Origin: Kudoa neothunni
Lineage: Eukaryota; Animalia; Cnidaria
Assembly: GCA_964304625.1 (NCBI GenBank)
Contig: OZ199838.1
Location: 6,242,144-6,306,143, forward strand
Length of the DNA stretch: 64,000 nt
Direction: 5' to 3'
The position numbers and the translations under genes were made by a program. The notes beneath the pieces are model-generated. The model was not told where the DNA came from and made no database searches. It saw only the letters and a program-made list of their open reading frames with translations. This document shows, piece by piece, positions 1 to 54,900 of the stretch (its first letter is position 1; every line of letters starts with the position of its first letter).

Positions 1-2912
1 AAACTAAAACGTATGCAATGGCTGGGAATGTTTACCAAAACGTGACCCACAGTATTTAAAAAATCACGTGTATTGCTCGGATTTTCATTAAAAACACAAT
101 TCACGTATTATTCAAGATTAGATTTAATATGACCGAATCAGCAGTGGTTCGTCTGACAGAGAAATAAATAATTTGTGTTAGAACGGATTAGAAAATTTAG
201 CTAATGCGCCTGCTCAACATCGACAGATTTACCAACTACAGCATGGTTGGATTTAATTTTTCCGGTCAAATTCCCAAATTCACCAGACATTTCAATAAGG
301 CAACATTAATTATTCCATCCAAATAATTTGAAATTTTATTTTTTAGAGTGCTAGATATACATCTAATCTTAACAACTTGCATTTTAAAGCCTGTCGAAGT
401 GGCTCCACTTTCTTCAAATTTAAAAAGTGCTTCCTCATATTATAATATATGAATTAACGCATTTATAGAAATATTGTTTCTTTCAACAAAAATGACACTT
501 CTTCTCCTTTGATTGGTGTAAATATTTTGAATAATGTTATGAATGGGCATTATGTCGTTGGAATATCTGGCATGTATGAGCTTTCTTCTGACGATTCCGC
601 CAACAGCAAAGATGCGGTTTCAACGCTTGCTCTACTGTGTTGGTTGAAGCAGATAATGGCGCCATCTTCTATTCATCTTTAATTTCTTTTATTGTCTTTG
701 CCTTTCTTAGGTGTTGTGATTTTAAGTTGCATTCTTCTATTATATTCATTGCATCAAAGTTTTTTTAATTTTTGCTTAGATTTGAGTAATGGTAATTTGA
801 GATATTGTCGGTTTTATTAAATTCTGTCGAATTATTACAACCATGAGGTTTTAGGCACATAGCTGAGTTGTGTTACTGAGCGAAGGTTGTTTTGATTTTA
901 CGGAATTTACTTTCGTTACTAATGGTTTTTATGTATCCTATCGGAGATCTTTTCCCAGCTTGGAAGGATATTAGTTAATTGAGTTGTTGTGATTTCAGTC
1001 ATTATACAATTGAATCGCGTTGAAATTGTTTTCGCGCTCAATAAATTTTACAATTAACATTTATTTTAACTATTCAACGGATAAACTTTTAAATTTTAAC
1101 AAAGGTTTTATCTTTATTATCTAACTGATTTCACCTTTTTTCTGCAGCGTGAACATTTGAGGTTGGAATAAACAAAAATTCGGCCATAATAATATCAATT
1201 ATGATATTTTATTCATCTATGTGTTTTTTCATTAAGAAATACATTAAAATAATTTTTATTTAGCAAAAAACAACATGCCGTGCATCTTTTACACGCGGAC
1301 TGTGATTTTCATTAGAAACTACAATAGCTCCCTTCCACCGATACAATCTCTGAAAACTACTGACCTAATCCTATCATGTAGATTCGTCTAGGTCATAAAA
1401 TTAATTGTTTATTTTGAGGTTCACTTTTAATTGTCTACATTTTAGATTTATTTAATGAAGATTTACGTAACAATTGTTAAAGGCCGTTTCTTTTGAACAT
1501 ATATGCAGAAATAGTGATAATTTCAGAGGTTTATTCTAGTAACATAGATAATGCGGCATTCTAGCAATTTCTATCCATCTTATTATTCAAATAGACTTCG
1601 TAATATCTACAATATTCGTAAAAAATTTAAAGATAACTAAAAGAGGGTTTGATTTACTTAGTATCAATAAAGTCAGATGCGGATTAAAGAAAAAAGTGAC
1701 TTAATCCGGACATCCATAAAACCTATCGATCTTATTAAATTACTCTTCACCCTTAATAGTATCTGTTAATACAAGAAAATAAAAATTCTCGGCTCTTTTT
1801 AATCAGTATATCGAATTCTATATTTAGAGTAATAAAAGTGAAATGAGAATAGAAAATTTGCTATTAAGTCATGTTGATTGTAATAATTTGAACGTCAACA
1901 AAATTGTTGACCCTCGGAATATCACTCTCTGTATATGACAACCATTACCGCAAAAATTTATTCATTTTAAAATGTCTAGAAACAAAAATAAATATCTATC
2001 GTGTTCCAAAATATTGGTGGCAATAACGTGTTTTGGTAATTTAAATTTTTTTATACTAATTTCCAAATAACATATATGACGCCTAATAGCCTAAGTTCTA
2101 ATGTTTTCCAGCAGCACAAAAATATACCAAATATTGTTTTTATTGATAAAATAATTTTTTATAACCAGCACCAATTAAACGCAAATTCTCGCTAATGATT
2201 ATACATTTTATCTGTTGATGTAAAATAAATCATAACAAAATACAAAATTAACCGTTATAAATCAAAAAAATTCTTATCACTATAGCAAAATTAGTTATTT
2301 TATCCAAAAGTAATCTGTATTTACTTATATTGATGTATAACAAGAATGTTTGACCAATATTACACTTGTACATTTTTAAATACTCACGTACACAAATAAA
2401 TAAGATGGCTTTGATTGACAGTAAATAGGCGGGATGAGGTTACTGTACGATACCGAGGTTTAACAGGCGCTTATAGCCATAAAAATATCCAAATCACAAA
2501 AATGAATACTCTCCTCGCAGGTCTAGGTTAAGGGAATAAATATTCTTAAATTTCATTAATTAAAAAAATTCTTAATTCGTCATATGCAACTTCGCATACA
2601 TACTCTCCTAGTCTGCCAACATCACTTATGGAGTCCATGAACATTAACATGGGAGTTAACCGGTTTTTTATGAAAAATTATAACAATAAATTAGCTCATC
2701 ACCTCATTTAATTGAAATTCAATTATTAAATATAACTCGTAAACATGGTAATAATTGCAAATATGGTACATCCATAGATTTCGTCATTTAAAATTTAAAA
2801 TCAATATTGGAATATCAAGAAATTTGTGAAAAATTTGGATCAAGAGGTATTTAAAAATATTCTAGAAAGTAATCTATAATATTCCTGACGTTATACAAAA
2901 TTCGCGAAACAG

Positions 2913-3693
2913 CTAATTGAGCTCTTCTCCAACAGGCATAGTTTCTTTGATTTTTCCAACAAAAATAACACGAATTTCTGTGGAATCATCACCATTGAGA
3001 ATATCCTTGACGAAAAAGACATCTGTTTTGAGTTGTACCTAATCATGTAATAAAAATAATTTTATTCAGGGAAGATGAGCCGAGGAGCAATAAAACGAAC
3101 CATTTCGAGACATCCTCTTATGATACCACAAATGGCATTCGAATACCACAAACCGGCGTGAAGTATTGGATCGAGCTCGACGTTTTCAGCAAGTGGATTG
3201 TTATCAAGTATAATAGAAAATTCGGTATTTGTGCTATTCCAATTGGCGATTTTCGGAGTAACGCCGGTGTATTGTTTGAATCCAACCTACGTGAGTTGGT
3301 TTGGCAACAATTAGAAAATATGTTCCACAACAATAATGACTTTACATTCGCTATGGCGTTGGCCGTATCATTCATGTTTTTGCATCTTCCAATGTTGGTT
3401 TTAACCTGTAAATCTTCAATTAGACGAATTCCAATATTGTATCCCCTTAAGGAAAGATACAATTACAAAAAATCATGAAAAAAATAAAACACATTTGATC
3501 TAGCTTTTTGTTTATTTCTTCAACCTTTGAACCATTTTCTTTAAGAATTTTATTAACAAATACTCCATAAGTTAAACTGAACAATTCCCAACACTTCAAA
3601 TGGCACAAAATGAACTTCTATCGAGAATAAACAAAGAAAATGTACAATAAATTTTCTGTTCTCATTGGATTTATTTATTAATTTGTTTGACAT
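2913..3693 (-). CDS. TRAPPC3: TRAPP complex subunit 3 (Bet3), 5 exons
   Basis: Manual splicing of 4 short GT-AG introns gives MSNKLINKSNENRKFI-CWELFSLTYGVFVNKILKE...KKLDQMGYNIGIRLIEDLQVKTNIGRC...NNPLAENVEL...CGIIRGCLEM...DILNGDDSTEIRVIFVGKIKETMPVGEELN*. This matches Bet3 motifs (ELF.LTYG, GYNIG.RLIED, NPL..VEL). Confidence 0.95.
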
Positions 3694-4901
3694 TCTGTTA
3701 ACAAGACGAAATAAATTTCCGACAACTGAACTCGTCACGACTCGTATTGAAATGGCATTTTTCTATCCGTACCCTTGTCGAATGAAGCATGTCCATCTTT
3801 TTATTCAAATTCTTTTACTCAACGATTTTTTATTATTCCCAAACTAGTGCTTAAATAAAAATATTTTCAAAAACAATCTTTACTGTTCAGGTTCATGAAA
3901 TAAGTTACTATCGATAAAGTATATTACGAAACTCAATGAGCTATTTTATTTACTGGTATTTTTTTATATTTTATTTTATGAAGCCAATTTAATTACTTTT
4001 TAGGAATAGTTTAAAATGTTATTTTTCAAATCGAAAAATTATTTATCGCTAAAATAATTAACTCCCTTATTTCAAATTTGTGGGTTCAAAAAAAGCCTTT
4101 ATAAGTAACCCGTGATGAGGTGCTGTGTAGATTAAGATGAGACTGTGCACGTATGTGTCAATGTTTAAGATTAATTTGCGTGGGCCACTTGGGTAAGTTT
4201 TAAGTTAAATACTGATTTGAACAATGTTTTTTACTCATTGAAATCATCCTTTCCTTCTATCTCAATTAGTTTATTATTTGAATGTTTTCGTTTTAAAAAA
4301 TAAACAGAAATAATTTTTTTATCTTTTAAATTTTAAATAAATTTTTTGTTCATTTTCTAAGAAATCTATATTTTGAAAATTTTCAAATAATTGAACACTA
4401 TCGCACTTCATAATCTTTATCAAGAAATTAAATTCAGGAATTCAATGTTTTCATTTTAAGTTCCCCAATATATTCATGATAATTTTTCAATAAAAAATTA
4501 TGTTATTATGATAATATAGACTAACCATGTTAAAATATAAAATTCGACTTAAACAATAGCACGACCATCGTTTGATCAGCAAAAAGCTACTTCTAATTGG
4601 CTATATTTAATTCAAATGACTATAAAAATTTTGAATAACTTGGATTGTATGAATAAACACCCCGATAAATTAAGTAAATAAAATACAGTGGGTGACGGAT
4701 AGTTCGTAATTTCTAAGGTTGCACGCACGACGATATGGAGGAAAAAATGATTCAAATCAACTATAATGATAAATTATTTTAAAAGAGATCACTCAGTTAC
4801 AATAATATTTTTAAGTTTTCTGACAATTAAATTGTGTACTTCTCGTTAAATATCCGTTTGATGTTTATAACTATTTAAACCATGATGTTTCGAGTAATGT
4901 C

Positions 4902-23687: not shown

Positions 23688-24412
23688 CAGTGGTTTTCAG
23701 CCGAGGTTCCACGGCAGGAATACATATGAAAATTTTTTATTGACAGCTAAATTTAAATAATGTGGTCGAAATGTTTGGCGATGTCGAATATGAACAATTT
23801 GGTGCATTTTAATTAATTATTATTCTCATAACAAGTACCTCAATTTAGAATAATTGTAATAATAAAGATTTAAAACCTATTAATTTGTTAAAACCCCACT
23901 GAATACTGGTAGCGGTGCTCCAAGAATTTGAGTTTGTTTTTAAATGCAAGAGCCCGAATCTCATCAAATTTGTTATCGTTTCTTCTTTTTTCCTTTAAAA
24001 ATTTTCTGCATAGCAAGCATTTTGCGATACCAAGGATCGTGTTATTCTGTCGCAATTGAAACAACAGAAAGTGAATGACCCATGCTTGCTTTCACTTATA
24101 AACAATATCCAAAAAGTTATCGCTTTTGATTCAACGCTTCAACGTAGAGACGAAAATTATCCAAATATTGTAGCTGTAATACGAAGTCAACAACCACAAC
24201 CACAAATATCATTAGTTTTTATTTATTTTTAATACAAAATAAAATTTGAAAATATCTGTTGTTTCTTTTTATTTATTTTTTTTTTGTGAACGCGCGTGCA
24301 AATTTAAAAGCTTGTATTTTCATCATTTGGGTTTAATTTTATGTGTGGTGATCCGCGACAAAATTTTAATCTCTTTGGGGTTCCGCGGTTCCGAAAAGGT
24401 TGAAAACCACTG
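23688..24412. mobile_element. hAT-like MITE
   Basis: TIRs CAGTGGTTTTCAGCC / GGTTGAAAACCACTG. Confidence 0.7.
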
Positions 24413-24420
24413 AATTAGAT

Positions 24421-24882
24421 AAAAATGCCGAGGACAGATAGCACATCGGTGTGACACTCGGATTCGAGCCTTGAGGTAATGAGTTCGAATCCGCCGGTGG
24501 TCAGACTACTGCTTCCGTGTCGGTGGGTCCCTATCCCATATTTGGGAATTGTGGTTAAAGTGTACGCTCGCTGTGGAGTGGGGTGTACTAGCAGCCTAAT
24601 TCGCGTGAATAGGAGTTGGAATCTCCGGAACCCATCGAAAGGCAAATAATTTGCAGTCCCCACAGAGCCAACATCCTGAAAGGGATAGGGTTTGGGATGA
24701 TGGTCACCCTAAGATGAGGGTGTTTAATGGGTTAAAGTTCCACATTATTATCGCATAAAGATAAGGGACGGAGTTTCATGTTACGTCCTGCGGTGCCTAA
24801 ATCGTTAATGGAAGAGGTCTGACCAATCAGAATTCCACAACCTAATAAGTTGCGCTAGGGGTTTTACCTTGTAAACAAAAAA
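24421..24882 (+). mobile_element. tRNA-derived SINE with a large structured body
   Basis: Pol III A-box-like TAGCACATCGG (24439-24449), B-box GAGTTCGAATCC (24481-24492), A-rich tail, and a perfect 12-bp TSD ACTGAATTAGAT (24409-24420 and 24883-24894). Confidence 0.88.
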
Positions 24883-27378
24883 ACTGAATTAGATTCTATT
24901 ACGGTTGAAGAACATAATAAAATATTTTTATAAAAAACGGGTTTAAAAATGTTACTTTTTAATTGTGACGAAAAAAACACGATAATTAAATCTAAAACAT
25001 GCAATTTGTTCCAATATATTATTCGCTTTTAATACTTATCATTTATAATTATAGGCATTTTTCGGTATTTAAAAACAATTTTAATTACACTATTAAAATT
25101 TTTACAATTAAACATCATTTTTAATGGTGATGTTTTAGTTTCTAAATTTTTTAGCGGTTTTCTCTTGCAAAATTTAAAAGGTGTTTAATTAATAACGGAA
25201 GATATTTACTACCGGATTTTTTAAACTGTTGTTTCCCACATAACAGTAATAATAATACAAATGTATACGTCATTTATAATAAAAAATACAACACCTATAA
25301 CAGATTTATTTAAAAAATGTTTAATATAATTATTTAACTTTTACTCTTTATTTATTAATAATTTAATTCATTGACGAAATTCTTATTCTCAAGGATAAAT
25401 TTTATATTAAAGTTACATAAAATTAAAATATTATAGATTTCAGAAATACAAAATAAAATATTTTTTTGTAGAAGAGCAAAACAATATGAATTTGTGGAAT
25501 TATAACAAAATCTTTCGTCTCCTATAATAATTTTCTTCTTTTGTGTGTAAAGATTCATTTAAACAGCAAAAAGCATCCATATAACGCTAGTACGCACTTT
25601 TTGGAGAATTAAAAATGTAACAAAATAAAATTCTACTCCATATAACCGTTAGATTGCGCATACATAAAACAAAACTTAGTAATGTTTCGAGATTAATGCA
25701 GTGTATGATTATTTTCAATTATGTTATTCGTGCCAATTATTTGTTTATTACATCATTTTAATACTTCATACAAGATTTAATGAATGAGTTAATCCATCCT
25801 AACAATTATATACGTTTCTCGCAAAGTTTAGATATAGACATTTTAGTTTAGTATTAATCAATAATTATTGATTTTAATTGATTCATTAAACCGAATAAAG
25901 TAAAATTTAATTATCTTGTTATAATTGATTGTCGTTGGTCGGGTTCCTCCAAGATTCTATCGGATCATGTATATTTGATTTATCATCAATTTGATCATTG
26001 CTATTAGGCTCTCAGGAGTATATGTATATGTATAAAAGAAATCAATTTGGATTTAGTAATTAAGTTCACAGTTTTTTATAAAAAAAATATATGAATGCCA
26101 TCCACATTGTTTTCATTATCCATTTATCATAGTTACATTATTTACATTAAATATAATAAAAATACTTTCTCGATTGTTTTTAAAAAATTTCTAAATTTGA
26201 TCATTGATTAAACTACGCTTTAATGAGGAAATTATTTCCCTAGGTTTATCATCTATTTTATAGAAAATTTTGGAGTTGATTTAACCCTAAAACAACCTAA
26301 TAATGAAAGCGTACAAAACTTTTTATTATTAACTTTTTTTTATTTATGTAGAATGACCACACATGTAGTTTAAAATCAACGAATCTATTCAGTTTTAAAG
26401 AACAACATGCAATCCTGTAATAAAACAAATTTACTAATAACTTTATGCACGTGGATAAAATTTATAATTATAAAATATCTCTGTTTTTCCGCATTGACTA
26501 TTAGTTCAGCTTTTGTTGTTTAATGAATTAACCCTGAATCATTTTTATTAATATAAAAATAGAAAAACGTTTAAATCAACGTTTAATCTCGTTCTACTTC
26601 TTTAAAATAAAAATCACCAAATAATGACAATACACTTTGATTTGGAGATACTGTTAAATTTCATGGTGACTAAAATTAGTGCTCAATATCCATCGAAAAA
26701 CCTCATATGGGAATTGAATTTCAGTGAGCAATAAAAATGAAGTGCGCAATATCCATTTTCTAGTATTTGTAAAAAAATTTCTTAAATAAATAATTCTGAA
26801 TATTTCCTTAACAGCTTAAAAGACTTAGGAGATAGAATTACACTTTATAAAACGATAAAATAATGACACAACGAAAAATGCGCGATGTCCACCTACGTAA
26901 TAGCCGCTGTTGACTGTAATCTTCAACTTATTATTATTATCTTTGATCCCCAATAACTAATCTCCTTAGAAAAACTAATAATCAATATTGTAAATAGGAA
27001 ACTTACATTAAAAAACTAATGTTGTGATAAAATACCCCAAAACCGTTAAAAAAATAAAAGTGACGAATCGACATAGGTGTAGCTTGATAGTTTAATAATA
27101 TTCATTTAAATTGCAATATTAACGCTTGAAATGTTCAGTAAAATTAGTGCTAAATTGTATTTTTAAATTAACAGAGTCAAAATAATTGCGAAAAAAAGTA
27201 TACATTTTCAATTATTATGTATAATATTGGACATAAACATTAACAAAATCAAATTTTAATTCGAGTAAACATTTTGGGTGTTTATGTAGGTCACCGGATA
27301 TTTTTTTGAAAAAATATGGGTCACGACTGAAAAAGGTTAGGAAAGACTGCTCTAGATGGAAGGAAAGCACAGAAATAA

Positions 27379-44530: not shown

Positions 44531-45110
44531 TTTTTCTTTTTTTGTTTACGAGGCAAACCTCAACTTGTCACTTATTTTAATTAATTGGTCGAATTTTGGA
44601 TGGCAATAACGCCTTCTTCAGCACTGTAGGCACCGCCGAACAGAGGCACACAGTACCAATCCCTTACCGTTCTACAATAGTGTGGGAGCTTAAATCCACT
44701 GAATATCTCACCTTGAAGTTGGATTCCAACCATTTAAGGACGCCACATTTGATAGAGGACTAACTTGGTAATAGTTTCATTTTCCCGTGAACATCTAGTC
44801 CGGCACCTCCTAAATGGGGGTGCGAGATTCGACCACAATAGAAGATTATTTTTGATTCAGCCATGCCCTATCGTATGCATAGAGGATGCGGATTTCGATT
44901 TTTCATCAAAAGGAGTGCAAATCCAATTTAGTTGAGAAGCGCTGATCTAAGCGGAAATTGTGAGCTGGTCCAGAGAAGGATCAAGCCTGATGTGAACAGA
45001 TCACGGGCCAAATGCCCTACAACTTGTTAAATCATTGAAACTAAAAGCTGAAGAACAGACTATTCAGCTAACGAACTCTGGTTTTCTCGCCTCAGCAATA
45101 ACTAAATGAC
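44531..45110 (-). mobile_element. Diverged second member of the structured SINE family
   Basis: It shares ordered blocks with 24421-24882: TTGTGGT, AGTCC, TT(C/T)A(G/A)TGG..TAAG.T.CCACA.TATT, TAAGGGA, GCGGTGCCTA, and the 3' end GGTTT(T)RCCTYGTAAACAAAAAAA. It has a degenerate B-box GAGTTCG. The 5' boundary and TSD were not resolved. Confidence 0.7.
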
Positions 45111-48763: not shown

Positions 48764-51463
48764 TTATATATAATAATCATTTAGCCACTTGGGTGCTTTA
48801 GAAATGCGGCAGCTGCGCTTCTTAACTCTTGCGTCTGGGTCCATATACGGAAGGGTATTGTTCTGATGTGTTTTCCTTACATTTCCATTATCATCATAGG
48901 TCATAGTGGTACCATTTTTGGACAGTACTTTGAAGGGGCCTAAGAAACGTTTTGACAAGGCGCTTTTACCTGACTGACTTTTAGTTAAAATTAGATTTGG
49001 CGTTTTCTCTTTTGCGATTGTTTTCCTATCATAACCACTTTTTTGTTTGCGTTGCGCTTTTCGAATATTGGAATGCGTCATTCTCATCATTTTCCTCATT
49101 GAATTTTGTAGTTCTATGGCATAGGTTTCATACTTTTGGCTGTATTTATTCTCTAGAGGTTGGAGAAAGGTATCTGTGATTGAGCTTAGGTTTCTCCCGT
49201 ACGTGAGCATGGCTGGAGTGTAAGCAGTACTGGCGCTAACGGTATTACGAAGTGTAAACAAGCATAATGGAAGAGCATCGTCCCATTGAAGAGATTTGGA
49301 ATTGCACATTATTCTTATTTTTTCTTTGAGGCTTTTCACGTATCTCTCAGCCAATCCATTCCCTTCTGGGTGATATGGGGTGGAACTAGTATGAGAAATA
49401 CCTAATCTTCTGCAGGTCGCGTTAAACAACTCAGATTCGAATTGGGTGCCACAATCCGTATGAATTGACTTGGGTATACCGTGGCGTGTCACAACCAAAT
49501 TCAACAACTCTTTTGTAGTGGAGAGGGCGGACATATTGGGTAAGGCAGCAGCTTCCAGCCATTTTGTGAATCTATCAACAAAAATATGTATGTATTTATT
49601 ACCTGAGCTAGATTCAGGGAAGGGTCCAATGAAATCTGCATGCCAATCGGTAGCAGGACCGTTGCATCTTATCGGCGTCAGTGGTTGCTTTTTCTCATTC
49701 ATCCCATATTTGTTTTGCTTACAGATTAAGCAGTTACCAACAAACGCCTTAACATCATCGGTGAGTGTTAACCAAAAAAAATTCCGTCTGATCCTTTCTT
49801 CTGTGTTCCGCTGACCACCATGGATAGTGTCTTCCTCATGAATTTTCCTAATGATCGGAATTTGAAGTTCCTTTGGCAATACCAGTAGCTTTCCACGTCG
49901 AGAATTGTCATATAACACGTCATTTTCCACCTCTAATTTCGCAATACGGTGATACAATTTATTGGGTTTATTCACTTTTTGATTGGCGTTGCCGTCTTTC
50001 CTGAGGAAAGATTTGATTTCCAGCACATCCGAATCCCGATTCTGAGCTTCCACAAAGTGTTCGTTTGAAGTTAATAATGAAACGGAGTTGACGCTCCTGG
50101 AAATGGCATCCGCAATCACATTATCGTCTCCTGGTAAGTATTTTATGTCGTAATCGAATTCTTCTAATTCTAGAAGCCAGCGGCTTCGTCTTCCACGAGT
50201 GTCTTTAATTTTCAAGATGTTTGCTAAGGGGTTGTGATCCGTCCAAAATGTAAACTTTTTACCAAGAAGGTAATGTCTGAACTTTCGAACTGCTACCAAC
50301 ATCGCCATGAGTTCTTTGTCAGTAGTGCAGTAGTTCCTCTGTGCATTATTAAATTTTTTACTTGTGTAGGCTATGACATTTTTCTTATTTCCATGATTTT
50401 GATATAATACAGCACCAATTCCAGCATTAGACGCGTCACATTCCACAACAAATGGTAGTTTGGGATTTGGGAACGATAGTGTTTGTGTATTTCTTATCTC
50501 TTGTTTTAATTTAGTAAAGCTATGCTGGGCGTCTGCAGTCCATTGAAACCTATCATTTTGGTTCGATAGCTTGAAGAGTGGTGAGGCGATGGCTGCCATA
50601 TCTTTGGCAAATTTATGTAGGAAGTTGCATGTGCCTAGAAACATTCTTAATTCCTTTGCTGAAGTGGGAGATTTCCAATCCATTATCGTTTTGACTTTTT
50701 CGGGATCTGGTGAAATACCATCGGGTGACACGATAAATCCAAGGAATTTAATTTCCTTGCTACCAAACACACATTTTTCTTTGTTCATTTTCAAGTTGTT
50801 TTCACGTAGTATGGTGAATACCTGTTTGAGGTGATTTAGGTGTTCTTCGCGTGACGTGGAATATATGATTATATCGTCGAGATATACTAATACAAAAGGT
50901 AATTCTCCTAAGAGAGCATCCATCATCCTTTGGAAGGTTGCGGGTGCGTTCACCAAACCAAACGGCATTTTGTTGTATTCATATAGCCCAAAGCCAGGAC
51001 CCAACGTGAACGCAGTTTTCTTCTTGTCTTCTCCTGCCAATGGGATTTGCCAGTAACCTGATTGTAAATCAATCGATGAAAAGTATTTTGCGCCATTCAG
51101 GTTGTCTAGGCATTCCTCAATTAGCGGCAGAGGATATTCGTCCTTTATTGTCAGTTCGTTTACCCGACGTAGATCAATACAAAATCTATACGAACCATTT
51201 TTCTTTTTTGTGAATACCACTGGAGACCTCCAAGGGCTCATCGACGGTCTTATCACACCTGCTTGTAATTGCTCGTTCAATAATTTCCGCACTTCCGTTT
51301 GTAAGTGTAACGGAACTCTGTATGCTCTTGACACGACAGGTGTAGAGTCTTTCAATTGGATCTTATGCACAAACCCTTTCGCTTCGCCCAGTTCAAGGTT
51401 AGAGTTTGCGAAAGTGTCGCAAAATTCGTCCAATAGTTGATCGATGGAAACAATTTTATCCAC
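48764..51463 (-). CDS. Gypsy pol (RT, RNase H, integrase)
   Basis: YLDD RT motif, CDAS/KEL/TDH RNase H, HHCC zinc finger, DFIGP...TDCG...GLAER integrase and GPF motif. The ORF has no ATG start and is presumably expressed as a fusion with gag-pro. Confidence 0.95.
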   Translation of the reverse strand: MDKIVSIDQLLDEFCDTFANSNLELGEAKGFVHKIQLKDSTPVVSRAYRVPLHLQTEVRKLLNEQLQAGVIRPSMSPWRSPVVFTKKKNGSYRFCIDLRRVNELTIKDEYPLPLIEECLDNLNGAKYFSSIDLQSGYWQIPLAGEDKKKTAFTLGPGFGLYEYNKMPFGLVNAPATFQRMMDALLGELPFVLVYLDDIIIYSTSREEHLNHLKQVFTILRENNLKMNKEKCVFGSKEIKFLGFIVSPDGISPDPEKVKTIMDWKSPTSAKELRMFLGTCNFLHKFAKDMAAIASPLFKLSNQNDRFQWTADAQHSFTKLKQEIRNTQTLSFPNPKLPFVVECDASNAGIGAVLYQNHGNKKNVIAYTSKKFNNAQRNYCTTDKELMAMLVAVRKFRHYLLGKKFTFWTDHNPLANILKIKDTRGRRSRWLLELEEFDYDIKYLPGDDNVIADAISRSVNSVSLLTSNEHFVEAQNRDSDVLEIKSFLRKDGNANQKVNKPNKLYHRIAKLEVENDVLYDNSRRGKLLVLPKELQIPIIRKIHEEDTIHGGQRNTEERIRRNFFWLTLTDDVKAFVGNCLICKQNKYGMNEKKQPLTPIRCNGPATDWHADFIGPFPESSSGNKYIHIFVDRFTKWLEAAALPNMSALSTTKELLNLVVTRHGIPKSIHTDCGTQFESELFNATCRRLGISHTSSTPYHPEGNGLAERYVKSLKEKIRIMCNSKSLQWDDALPLCLFTLRNTVSASTAYTPAMLTYGRNLSSITDTFLQPLENKYSQKYETYAIELQNSMRKMMRMTHSNIRKAQRKQKSGYDRKTIAKEKTPNLILTKSQSGKSALSKRFLGPFKVLSKNGTTMTYDDNGNVRKTHQNNTLPYMDPDARVKKRSCRISKAPKWLNDYYI

Positions 51464-51471
51464 AGTTTCAA

Positions 51472-52566
51472 TTATTTAACGTGTCCACTCATTGGCGACA
51501 ACTTAAAGTGTTTGGACAATGTTTCGCGACCAATGATTGCATTATGGGCGAGGCTTTTTGTCACATTAGCCCAAACTTTTACTTCGCGGCCACCCACGTT
51601 GATGTACATTTCAGTTATTCCGGTAGTTTCGAGATTGGAGCCATTGGCAGTAGTGAACTTCTTTTGCCCAAATACCACATTTTCATGCCTTACCAGATTT
51701 TGATTTACAAAGTTACAGCAAGCGCCCGTGTCGATCAATGCCTCAAATGTGATGAAATTACCAGGAATGCGCGCTTTTGTAAAAAAACAAGAATAATGAT
51801 CTCGACTCTCACTCACAACACTATGAATTTTTTTAAATTTGTAACAGATTCTCTGAAGGTGTCCTCGCTGACCACATTTATTGCAGATAGCGGTTCCTCT
51901 ACATGTCGTCGCAGTGTGTTTTGTGCCTCCACATTTGGTGCAACCGTATTTTGTGTAGTTAGATAGGCTTTTTGTATTGTTCACAGTTGTTCTTGCCGAG
52001 ATAGATGCTAACTCATCAGCATGGCGGTCTGTAATATCTAGTGGTTGGGTATTGTTCAAGAATGATTGGGTTTTTTCAATTAGTTGGAAAATATCAGCGC
52101 TATCCACCAGTTTAAGATATGCTCGGGTCTGTTTAGGAACGCATTCATATATTTTCGGTTTTATGAAAAATTCGGCATCATCAACCGTGGCATTTGGTCT
52201 TGTGGCTCTGAACAAGTGGAGGATTCGTTGATAGAAATCTAGCACACTTTCATTTAGTTTAATGGAAGCACGGCTGAATTCATCAAAGTAGGCTTCTTTC
52301 GATTTTAATCTGCTAGCGTAGGATTTGACGTTATTGTTCAATATCAACAGCATTTGGCTGTAGTACGTAATGGTAATGTCGACTCCAGTAGGTGGTTTTA
52401 GTGTTTCTCTTGAGTGACGTGGCAACGCGAGTAATGTTGCGGCATAAAGTTGTCTCTCATTCCAACCTTTGGAAATTGCATAGAGTTGTAATTCCTCCAA
52501 TTGTTGGTCAATGTTCCCATCAAAGTTTATTTTTAGAGGTACTTCGTTGTTTACCTCTGACACCAT
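51472..52566 (-). CDS. Gypsy gag-protease
   Basis: Two CX2CX4HX4C knuckles (CTKCGGTKHTATTC, CNKCGQRGHLQRIC) and aspartic protease motifs ALIDTGA...IIGRE. Confidence 0.92.
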   Translation of the reverse strand: MVSEVNNEVPLKINFDGNIDQQLEELQLYAISKGWNERQLYAATLLALPRHSRETLKPPTGVDITITYYSQMLLILNNNVKSYASRLKSKEAYFDEFSRASIKLNESVLDFYQRILHLFRATRPNATVDDAEFFIKPKIYECVPKQTRAYLKLVDSADIFQLIEKTQSFLNNTQPLDITDRHADELASISARTTVNNTKSLSNYTKYGCTKCGGTKHTATTCRGTAICNKCGQRGHLQRICYKFKKIHSVVSESRDHYSCFFTKARIPGNFITFEALIDTGACCNFVNQNLVRHENVVFGQKKFTTANGSNLETTGITEMYINVGGREVKVWANVTKSLAHNAIIGRETLSKHFKLSPMSGHVK

Positions 52567-52689: not shown

Positions 52690-53737
52690 GGCGATTCTTT
52701 ACAAAACGGGACTGCAGTCGGAAAATTTCGGAGGAAATCGCGAAAAAACAACACAATAAATTATATTAAATAATTATTCATAATTTCTTTAAAGAAAGTG
52801 CTAAGTTCGATGCCTCTATATTTTTTACAGAATATATAATCCGAAATGAAGTCATATAATGACTCTTCATTTTTATTTGTAATATTTCGGTACTTCCTTT
52901 TAAATCCTCCCCACGTAGCTTCGATCTTATTTGTGTGTACACCAGTACCAGAAATAAACGAATATTTGTGATAGAATGTATCGTGAAAAAATCCTAAATC
53001 GTTCAGGTGATTATAGCCTCTCCATTCATCAGTCCAGATAACAGAATTCTCTTCAACATTATCGAGAATAATTTTTTCCAATACAGAGCTGCTTCCTCTC
53101 TTCGTCAGTTCAAAAAAACATTCACCTTCCTCATCTATACTACCAACAATCCAATATTTCTGGGGTTTTAACAGTCTACCAACATTATATTTTCGTTTAG
53201 TCACCGCAGTTTCATCGATCTGGACAACGACATTTGCACCGCCAATTTTTTTTCTCTCGTCAGTAATCTTCAATGTGATAATACTCCTTAATAATTCAGA
53301 CCAATCACATATTGTTTTTGAAGAGAGGATTCCGACGTGTCTTTGTATTTCTTCGTAGGTAACCTTGCTGAATTGAATTTTTACGAGGAAAAATATAAAT
53401 AGTTTCCACAGTGGCAGTTTAGAATGCTGAAATATTGATCCAACTCGTAGGTTTTGCTTCTTCAAACAACCCGGGCATCGGAAGAAAAACAGATCTTGGC
53501 AACTTTTATTTGATATGAGATGCATCATCGTCCCACAAATGCACGTTTTCTCTGATGAAATTAGACCAAGATCCTGCAATATTTTGATGGTATAAATTGT
53601 GTCAATCCTAAAAAATGCATATTCCATCATATTGATGGAATCAATATTCTCCAAATCAAAATCTCTCCTGAAGTTTTCCATTTTCCGGGCGCGCGACGAA
53701 AGTTTCCGACTGCAGTCTCGTTTTGTAAAGAATAGCC
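52690..53737 (-). mobile_element. Autonomous-looking Merlin (IS1595/ISXO2-like) DNA transposon, 1,048 bp
   Basis: ~38-bp TIRs GGC(G/T)ATTCTTTACAAAACG(G/A)GACTGCAGTCGGAAA(A/C)TTTCG and a perfect 8-bp TSD AAATTTTT (52682-52689 and 53738-53745). Confidence 0.93.
52761..53681 (-). CDS. Merlin/ISXO2-like DDE transposase, 306 aa
   Basis: N-terminal CICG...CPGC, then VVQIDET, RKYNVGR, IWTDEWRGY and HTNKIEATW. The first ATG inside the TIR is at 53681; the ORF-track start at 53780 lies outside the element. Confidence 0.92.
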   Translation of the reverse strand: MENFRRDFDLENIDSINMMEYAFFRIDTIYTIKILQDLGLISSEKTCICGTMMHLISNKSCQDLFFFRCPGCLKKQNLRVGSIFQHSKLPLWKLFIFFLVKIQFSKVTYEEIQRHVGILSSKTICDWSELLRSIITLKITDERKKIGGANVVVQIDETAVTKRKYNVGRLLKPQKYWIVGSIDEEGECFFELTKRGSSSVLEKIILDNVEENSVIWTDEWRGYNHLNDLGFFHDTFYHKYSFISGTGVHTNKIEATWGGFKRKYRNITNKNEESLYDFISDYIFCKKYRGIELSTFFKEIMNNYLI

Positions 53738-54900
53738 AAATTTTTTTAAATATTATATCTTTTGTGTATGAATGAAACAATTTTAACTAACAACAAAAAT
53801 AATAAAATTGTCAATAGTTTTAACACAACATTTTCTTTTAAATTCATTAACATGGGCGTTTTGAAGTCGGATAAAGATTATTTGGCGAAAAATTCAAAAC
53901 ATTATATAGTTCATTTGTGTCAAATGAATAATTCTATATTCATATTCTAGACATAATGTTATATTTACATAAAATCAGTTATTAAAAAATATTAAACAAT
54001 GTTTATTTCAACATTGTAGATTTTTTACATTTACTTAAATAGAGTAGTACAGAAAATTTTGTATGATACGCTTTTTTCTTTATTGGATTTATCTACAAAA
54101 CCTCAAAAATCGTCTATTTTATATATTGATAATTTCTGTATTATATTTATTATTTTATGACAAAAATATCAGTTTATAATTTTTTTAGAAGATAATGGAC
54201 ATATTAAAATGCAAACTTTCAAATTTAAACAATATTTTTATTTTTCATAATTGTACTTTCAAAGAAATTCAGTCATATAACTTTATCCAGTGAATATAAA
54301 TTTACCAAAAAAATTATAAACTATGCATCTTGTTTTAACATAAGAAATCGCAATGAGATTTACATTTTATCGATTTGATATGAACAAATGGATTTGCTCA
54401 GTTTATAAAATGTAACACCATTATATAGAACGCTCAAATTCCCTTTTTGGTCAAATAATCATCTTAAACATAATTTAAGTGATTTAATATAACGAATGTG
54501 TTAAAATATGTGACAAATAATGAAATAGACAAATTTTTGTATACAAAAGGGAGATTACACATGGGGACGATGTTTCTCGAAGTGGAATTTGGTTAAAATT
54601 TAGAAGTTATTTTTTAAAGCTGAATTTTTGCACATCATATTTATTTATTTTGTTAATAAGAATCGTAGAAAATCGGCGATAAAAAAAATACGCAAAATTA
54701 TGTTTTTAGGTGTCACAGGCTTTAGAATTACCATTATCTTTCTAATAAAAATTCACAATTTTATTTAAACTTTAAACTTTACTTAATTTATAATATAAAA
54801 TGATTTGAAATTTGTTTTGTATTGTAAATCCAGTTTTCCATAAAATTAGAAAATTCAGACTTGCTTAAAAAAATTGATTAGTACGCATGCTCAACAAATT

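Follow-up and report, generated by a model that had tools for sequence, protein, structure and literature searches.

Structure of the element and its insertion site

The window, that is, the whole stretch of 64,000 nucleotides of Kudoa neothunni DNA that was analysed, harbours a SINE on the plus strand. Its exact bounds (24421-24882, 462 bp) are set by the flanking copies of the target-site duplication (TSD). The first-pass annotation described a perfect 12-bp TSD, and this was confirmed: ACTGAATTAGAT is identical at 24409-24420 (left copy) and at 24883-24894 (right copy), both read on the plus strand, as are all of the following features of this element. Six A-rich extra bases (AAAAAT, 24421-24426) lie between the left TSD and the conserved 5′ end GCCG. 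Other copies of the family carry 0-12 extra bases at this junction, and the six bases look like 5′-junction filler from target-primed reverse transcription.

The filler is followed by a tRNA-like RNA polymerase III head (24427-24498), with an A-box-like site at 24439-24449 (TAGCACATCGG) and a B box at 24481-24492 (GAGTTCGAATCC); in the consensus of the family (fam1), the B box is a perfect GGTTCGAATCC. ARAGORN called no tRNA in the head under default settings, and Rfam gave no tRNA match to it. Relaxed ARAGORN runs on the heads gave inconsistent Leu, Ser and Val calls.

The body (approximately 380 nt) has two parts. The 5′ half (24499-24682) aligns collinearly with related lineages but shows little conservation; it holds the 5′ arm of a long-range duplex (24499-24518). 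The 3′ region of approximately 190 nt (24683-24876) is conserved and common to five SINE lineages, and it holds the 3′ arm of the same duplex (24808-24824). A terminal stem-loop, UAGGG-GUUUUA-CCUUG (24856-24871; helix 4, paired in 84% of cells), stands directly 5′ of GTAAAC. The element ends in ...GGTTTTACCTTGTAAAC and a short tail of six A (24877-24882; 6-10 A in other copies). Its G+C content is 48%, compared to 31% in the 40.26-Mb genome assembly. The A and B boxes, the TSD, the A tail and at least 340 candidate copies bear out the initial identification as a tRNA-headed SINE.

The right flank (24887-25050) is itself repetitive: contigs cover it at a depth of 140-280, compared to approximately 50 for the left flank, and several of them show 15-21 differences from it.

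Copy number, divergence and decay

A DNA search of the assembly found at least 340 fam1 candidates; all of the 40 that were scored were near full length, with 84-89% identity. The exact tail pattern GGTTTKNCCNYGTAAAMAAAA occurs at 96 genome sites (0 for the reversed control). With up to two mismatches it occurs at 342 sites vs. 28 for the control, approximately 314 net. TSDs of approximately 11-16 bp were visible in most of the 30 fam1 copies examined. These TSDs, together with the A tails and the extra 5′ bases of some copies, are what target-primed reverse transcription at unspecific sites leaves behind.

The window copy diverges by 7.8% from the fam1 majority consensus, and the copies span 3.6-11.2%. 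The insertion had been called fairly recent on the strength of the perfect TSD; the copy is recent in relative terms only and moderately old. Divergence is nearly uniform along fam1 (7.5% in the head, 6.6% in the 5′ body, 5.3% in the 3′ region and 4.7% in the tail). At least three length subfamilies exist, one with 17 additional nt, one lacking approximately 17 nt and one plain. The private changes of the window copy are mostly G>A or C>T, which fits neutral decay in a genome with 31% G+C.

In the alignment of 30 copies, CpG positions of the fam1 consensus have diverged by 10.1%, compared to 5.6% elsewhere. To our knowledge, myxosporeans have been reported to be without cytosine methylation. 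The CpG excess may reflect a general GC-to-AT bias instead of methylation.

Two SINE copies (C2:8027118-8027588 and C2:8076703-8077173, in loci L010 and L011) have identical flanks and lie approximately 50 kb apart, indicating a SINE inside a segmental duplication. The same pattern of duplicated flanks was seen for the copies at C2:2479944 and C2:2552039.

Two metagenome pattern scans for relatives elsewhere returned one chance match only. Three metatranscriptomic runs with the same species label contained no reads of this organism and none that matched the stretch. Fam1 appears to be an undescribed SINE family belonging to a small group of related lineages.

Related lineages and the conserved 3′ region

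Four further lineages were linked to fam1 by nhmmer, using the window copy as query and then a profile: famB (L059:884-1382), famC (L050, approximately 1037-1430, minus strand), famD (L038:2638-3128, minus strand, and L058:1992-2487) and fam2. The last is an old, strongly diverged relative in the same window (44544-45110, minus strand; E-value 2.6e-8 for the single query sequence, 3.2e-48 for the profile), interrupted by an unrelated repeat of approximately 130 nt.

This nested repeat (44815-44944 of the window) occurs with 70-77% identity at 29 or more other loci, among them approximately positions 1500-1640 of L032-L060. In L032 it lies within a longer repeat with a short inverted repeat nearby. 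At four of its loci, a non-fam1 SINE is found no more than 1.5 kb away, a number above our chance expectation. The body of the famB copy contains an expanded (GT)n microsatellite and an expanded G run (L059:1000-1030).

The five lineages align collinearly from head to tail. Modular swapping of bodies between the lineages examined was considered and rejected, as the alignments are collinear throughout. The last 190 nt or so are the best conserved (77% mean column identity in alignment A1). At the 3′ terminus of each of the five lineages, a short stem-loop precedes GTAAA(C)(A)n, and the stem sequences differ at the same place (GAGG-TTTG-CCTC in fam2 vs. CAGGG-GTTTTA-CCTTG in fam1).

Summed contig depth in the window's sample climbed from approximately 50 in the left flank to 300-1,350 in the body and 3,000-3,700 in the last 100 nt or so, a rise of approximately 3- to 10-fold from body to tail. 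Loose contig ends at 24836 read famD-like sequence. Both observations indicate that the tail is common to more elements than the body. Moreover, many copies carry the tail variant GGTTTTACC, and many carry GGTTTGACC. This excess of tail sharers over body sharers would be expected if the whole body were a captured LINE 3′ UTR, or the element a deletion derivative of a LINE, with an autonomous parent that is extinct or too rare to show up in the searches and a long-range duplex inherited from the UTR. We consider this origin unlikely. A covariance model of the 3′ region (R1) gave full-length, SINE-type elements in all of the 150 best genome matches that were scored (150-237 bits), and no ORF-bearing element with the SINE tail was present in the approximately 275 kb of sequence examined. 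The other SINE lineages and 5′-truncated copies, such as those behind the loose end at 24836, can also account for the additional depth over the tail.

Complementary motifs and the long-range duplex

Every complementary motif listed in the first-pass annotation was found at its position. The long-range arms are GGTCAGAC (24499) with GTCTGACC (24817), and CTTCCGT (24512) with ATGGAAG (24808). The proposed alternative fold also has its pairing, CCCTATCCC (24529) with GGGATAGGG (24682). The local hairpins TCCCA/TGGGA, GTACGCTC/GGGTGTAC, CCTAATTC/GAATAGG, GCAAA/TTTGC, ATCCTGAAAGGGAT (24673), CACCCT/AGGGTG, TTATC/GATAA and GGGACG/CGTCCT are all present.

Presence in the window copy was seldom matched by conservation. 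The body had been described as rich in hairpins, and so it is, but related lineages mostly lack a hairpin at the homologous site: TCCCA/TGGGA, CCTAATTC/GAATAGG, GCAAA/TTTGC, ATCCT/GGGAT, CACCCT/AGGGTG, TTATC/GATAA and GGGACG/CGTCCT are mostly unstable there (Fisher p 0.09-0.92). The best-kept hairpins are at consensus positions 135-165 (Fisher p 0.003) and 365-380 (p 0.007), neither of which is significant after correction for approximately 25 tests. The hairpin at 135-165 is kept stable in lineages with only 30-58% identity. The GAAA tetraloop reported as a GNRA loop does exist at 24678-24681; it is a private mutation of this copy, as the consensus reads TAAA, and T, not G, makes up 98% of the contig depth at 24678. 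The body hairpins are mostly what a sequence of this length with 48% G+C forms.

The helix said to close the whole body fared better in fam1. A perfect long-range complement of at least 8 bp occurred in 55% of 500 shuffles of the element, and the 8-bp perfect match is thus at chance level. By contrast, the extended duplex, in which the 35 nt that follow the head pair with the region at approximately 24800-24830, is above chance. Its energy is -27.6 kcal/mol in the window copy and -29.2 kcal/mol in the fam1 consensus, and it beats 300 of 300 shuffled partner segments and every other segment of the element. In the other lineages, the closing duplex was not significant (p 0.11-0.72; famB 0.30, famC 0.11, famD 0.11 and 0.15). 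Inspected by eye, famD and famC keep it partly, with a few swapped pairs (combined evidence approximately p 0.08). The long-range duplex is above chance in fam1 and weakly so in the relatives, and it is treated here as a fam1 feature.

A closing helix of different sequence in fam2 was also considered and rejected. It was not significant, and the 5′ arm of fam2 aligns so poorly that its duplex test is unusable.

Fold energy, covariation and Rfam searches

The window copy folds at -154.1 kcal/mol (minimum free energy), with a z-score of -4.15 on the plus strand (0 of 100 shuffles as good) and -1.70 on the minus strand. When the A tail was left out of a repeat test, z was -2.26. The fam1 consensus gave -1.69 (plus strand) and -1.01 (minus strand), its body alone -2.5 and its 3′ 200 nt alone +0.7. 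Among 29 fam1 copies the mean z was -1.0 (sd 0.93, range -4.07 to +0.73), and 26 of them were negative; the window copy lies near the favourable end of this distribution. The other lineages scored +0.48 (famB), +0.8 (famC), +0.09 and -0.69 (famD) and +0.57 (fam2). The SINE group therefore folds about like dinucleotide shuffles, and the expectation of a fold better than shuffled controls does not hold for the family or its relatives.

Covariation in favour of a fold was absent in three tests. Four plausible helices of the 3′ region were paired in 82.6% of cells vs. 81.6% in partner shuffles (79 of 500 shuffles reached the observed value), and their covariation score was below the shuffled mean; among them, H1, H2 and the terminal hairpin were paired in 76-87% of cells. 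RNAalifold compared to column-shuffled alignments gave a z of -0.94 for the 3′ region and approximately 0 for the rest. Pairs that had changed across lineages stayed pairable in 29-40% of cases, equal to random re-partnering (p 0.32-0.98; consensus and window copy, each in its minimum free energy and centroid folds). These tests used sequence-based MAFFT alignments with single decayed copies of the four lineages, and their power is limited accordingly.

A cmscan of the window copy against Rfam, on both strands, gave 0 matches at E-values up to 1. In seven other loci, at E-values up to 5, the only match was a chance tmRNA match outside the element. The search for a ribozyme or a known RNA family was thus negative in all of the loci scanned.

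These results bear on the proposal that the approximately 330-nt body is an undescribed, highly structured RNA module, a ribozyme or other functional cargo kept by selection, closed by the long-range helix and mobilised by the polymerase III head. Several observations agree with it: the z-score of the window copy and its difference between strands, the fam1 duplex (-29 kcal/mol, 0 of 300 shuffles as good), the negative z in 26 of the 29 copies, the hairpin at 135-165 kept in diverged lineages, and a few changes that look compensatory by eye (G-C to A-U at columns 20/73 of A1, in two sequences). We nevertheless judge it very improbable. No Rfam ribozyme or RNA family matched at permissive thresholds, the favourable energy of the window copy is shared neither by the consensus nor by the lineages nor by the 3′ region alone, and the three covariation tests were null. 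The closing duplex was at p 0.11-0.72 outside fam1, most of the listed hairpins are unconserved, the GNRA loop is private and 8-bp complements are at chance. Lack of covariation and folding no better than shuffles were the outcomes on which the first-pass annotation itself was prepared to give up the ribozyme-like reading. They are the outcomes obtained, and the reading is rejected.

Search for a partner LINE and its reverse transcriptase

The RVT_1 search gave 150 listed matches, most of them in LTR-type spans; approximately 22 spans were LINE-like, with ORFs of up to 2,243 aa. The LINE-like reverse transcriptase ORFs are very long (1,775-2,243 aa), and several stand in tandem arrays on C2 (approximately 1.01-1.04 Mb and 7.57-7.60 Mb). 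Partial RVT_1 matches (profile positions 30-201 or 55-184) near contig ends, at C1:17029233-17097710 and C3:12084-32622, may be telomere-associated retroelements.

One LINE was characterised further (L061:2190-4600, corresponding to G000:C3:8337190-8339600, minus strand). It encodes a reverse transcriptase, then a CCHC motif and then KPD...E.K, which fits a restriction-like endonuclease (RLE). Its 3′ end is the 3′ half of a tRNA (GGTCCCTGGTTCGATCCCGGG...) followed by a T run. No similarity between this LINE and the SINE was detected by nhmmer, with a single sequence or with a profile, or by comparison of the 3′ ends.

The APE domain PF03372 had one weak genome-wide match, with 10 stop codons (C3:1069361), and PF14529 had none. 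Consequently, no APE-type LINE is detectable in this genome. In a cross-check of coordinates by eye, the 10 kb downstream of each of the approximately 22 LINE-like reverse transcriptase matches contained no exact tail (96 sites compared), and the ORFs in the copy loci examined were DNA transposases or unassigned, with no LINE among them. A LINE sharing the SINE 3′ end, which the first-pass annotation had proposed to look for, was found neither in the sequence examined nor by the coordinate cross-check.

Mobile-element genes were seen near SINE copies at 48767-51475 and 52764-53786 of the window (both minus strand), L006:259-1038, L010:488-1054 and L043:405-1457. They comprise a 903-aa ORF with a reverse transcriptase in the window (LTR element), ISXO2/IS1595-like DDE transposase domains, a DDE_1 (pogo-like) fragment and a FAR1/ZSWIM-type (MULE-like) ORF.

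The R2 reverse transcriptase binds a large structured 3′ UTR. By analogy, the conserved 190-nt region of the SINE could be a protein-binding RNA scaffold for an RLE (R2-like) LINE that inserts at dispersed sites. We regard this as unlikely. APE domains were not found genome-wide, LINE-like reverse transcriptases with long ORFs are present, and RLE is the only LINE type confirmed in the genome, in one copy (L061); conservation across the five lineages is highest in the 3′ region, the two helices and terminal hairpin of which are largely paired. Against it, L061 ends unlike the SINE, none of the exact tails lies close downstream of a LINE-like reverse transcriptase, and the 3′ region has a z of +0.7 and no covariation. 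Moreover, APE LINEs are the more typical source of dispersed insertions with 11-16-bp TSDs and A tails.

An extension of this idea, which we hold to be quite unlikely, is that the 3′ region, together with the fam1 duplex, is a recognition scaffold by which the whole group of SINE lineages exploits a LINE of non-APE (RLE) type, the APE LINEs of this genome having been lost. If true, such hijacking would give dispersed insertions with 11-16-bp TSDs. We know of no description of a SINE/RLE-LINE partnership of this kind.

Discussion

The element at 24421-24882 is probably a fixed, moderately old copy of a tRNA-derived SINE, the 3′ end of which is under selection and the body of which has neither a conserved fold nor a ribozyme. 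To judge by the motifs, RNA polymerase III would initiate transcription from the A and B boxes inside the degenerate tRNA-like head. The resulting RNA of approximately 455 nt would then be copied into new sites by a LINE reverse transcriptase via target-primed reverse transcription, a step shown by its products, namely the dispersed copies, the 11-16-bp TSDs, the short A tails and the occasional 5′ filler bases. The 3′ end, comprising the approximately 190 nt up to the stem-loop and GTAAAC(A)n, would be selected in the source genes, and it most likely serves recognition by the LINE reverse transcriptase. The role in LINE recognition that was first assigned to the whole body is accordingly plausible for its 3′ part, which five lineages share; a structured scaffold running through the whole body is not supported.

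Several observations count against this explanation. No partner LINE with the SINE tail was found and no APE domain is detectable, which is odd for a SINE leaving TSDs of 11-16 bp. The fam1 duplex is clearly above chance, the mean z of fam1 is mildly negative and the hairpin at 135-165 is kept.

By description, the Kudoa SINE resembles the UnaSINE1/UnaL2 (eel) and MIR/L2 pairs. It shares with UnaSINE1 and MIR a tRNA-like head with A and B boxes, a body unrelated to tRNA, a 3′ stem-loop before a simple tail, and hundreds of dispersed copies flanked by TSDs; the 3′ end is likewise common to several lineages. In contrast to these pairs, our search for its partner LINE was negative, and the host genome contains no detectable APE domain. 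Moreover, the Kudoa SINE is long (approximately 455 nt), and approximately 190 nt of its 3′ end are conserved rather than approximately 50-70 nt.

Short non-autonomous retroelements are able to carry structured RNA. Sm-alpha of Schistosoma carries a hammerhead, R2-derived SIDE elements carry an HDV-like ribozyme, and retrozymes are ribozyme-bearing. The Kudoa SINE is an element of the same general kind, but it has no hammerhead, HDV-like, twister, pistol, hatchet or other Rfam match (both strands, seven copies or lineages, E-values up to 5). The CORE, V, Deu, Ceph and Meta superfamilies, again by description, likewise have an internal sequence, their central domain, conserved across SINE lineages. 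Unlike them, the Kudoa lineages, all from a single genome, remain collinear from end to end, a pattern that fits simple common descent.

In a paper on myxozoan genomes, SINEs are given only as a RepeatMasker total (PMC8855578), and myxozoan SINEs have been reported as nearly absent (bioRxiv 10.64898/2026.02.11.705288). Our literature search found no description of any myxozoan SINE family.

A mildly interesting point is which reverse transcriptase moved several hundred TSD-flanked copies in a genome without a detectable APE domain. The finding matters little as it stands. It adds an apparently undescribed SINE group to the repeat catalogue of myxozoans and is useful for repeat-masking the Kudoa neothunni genome.
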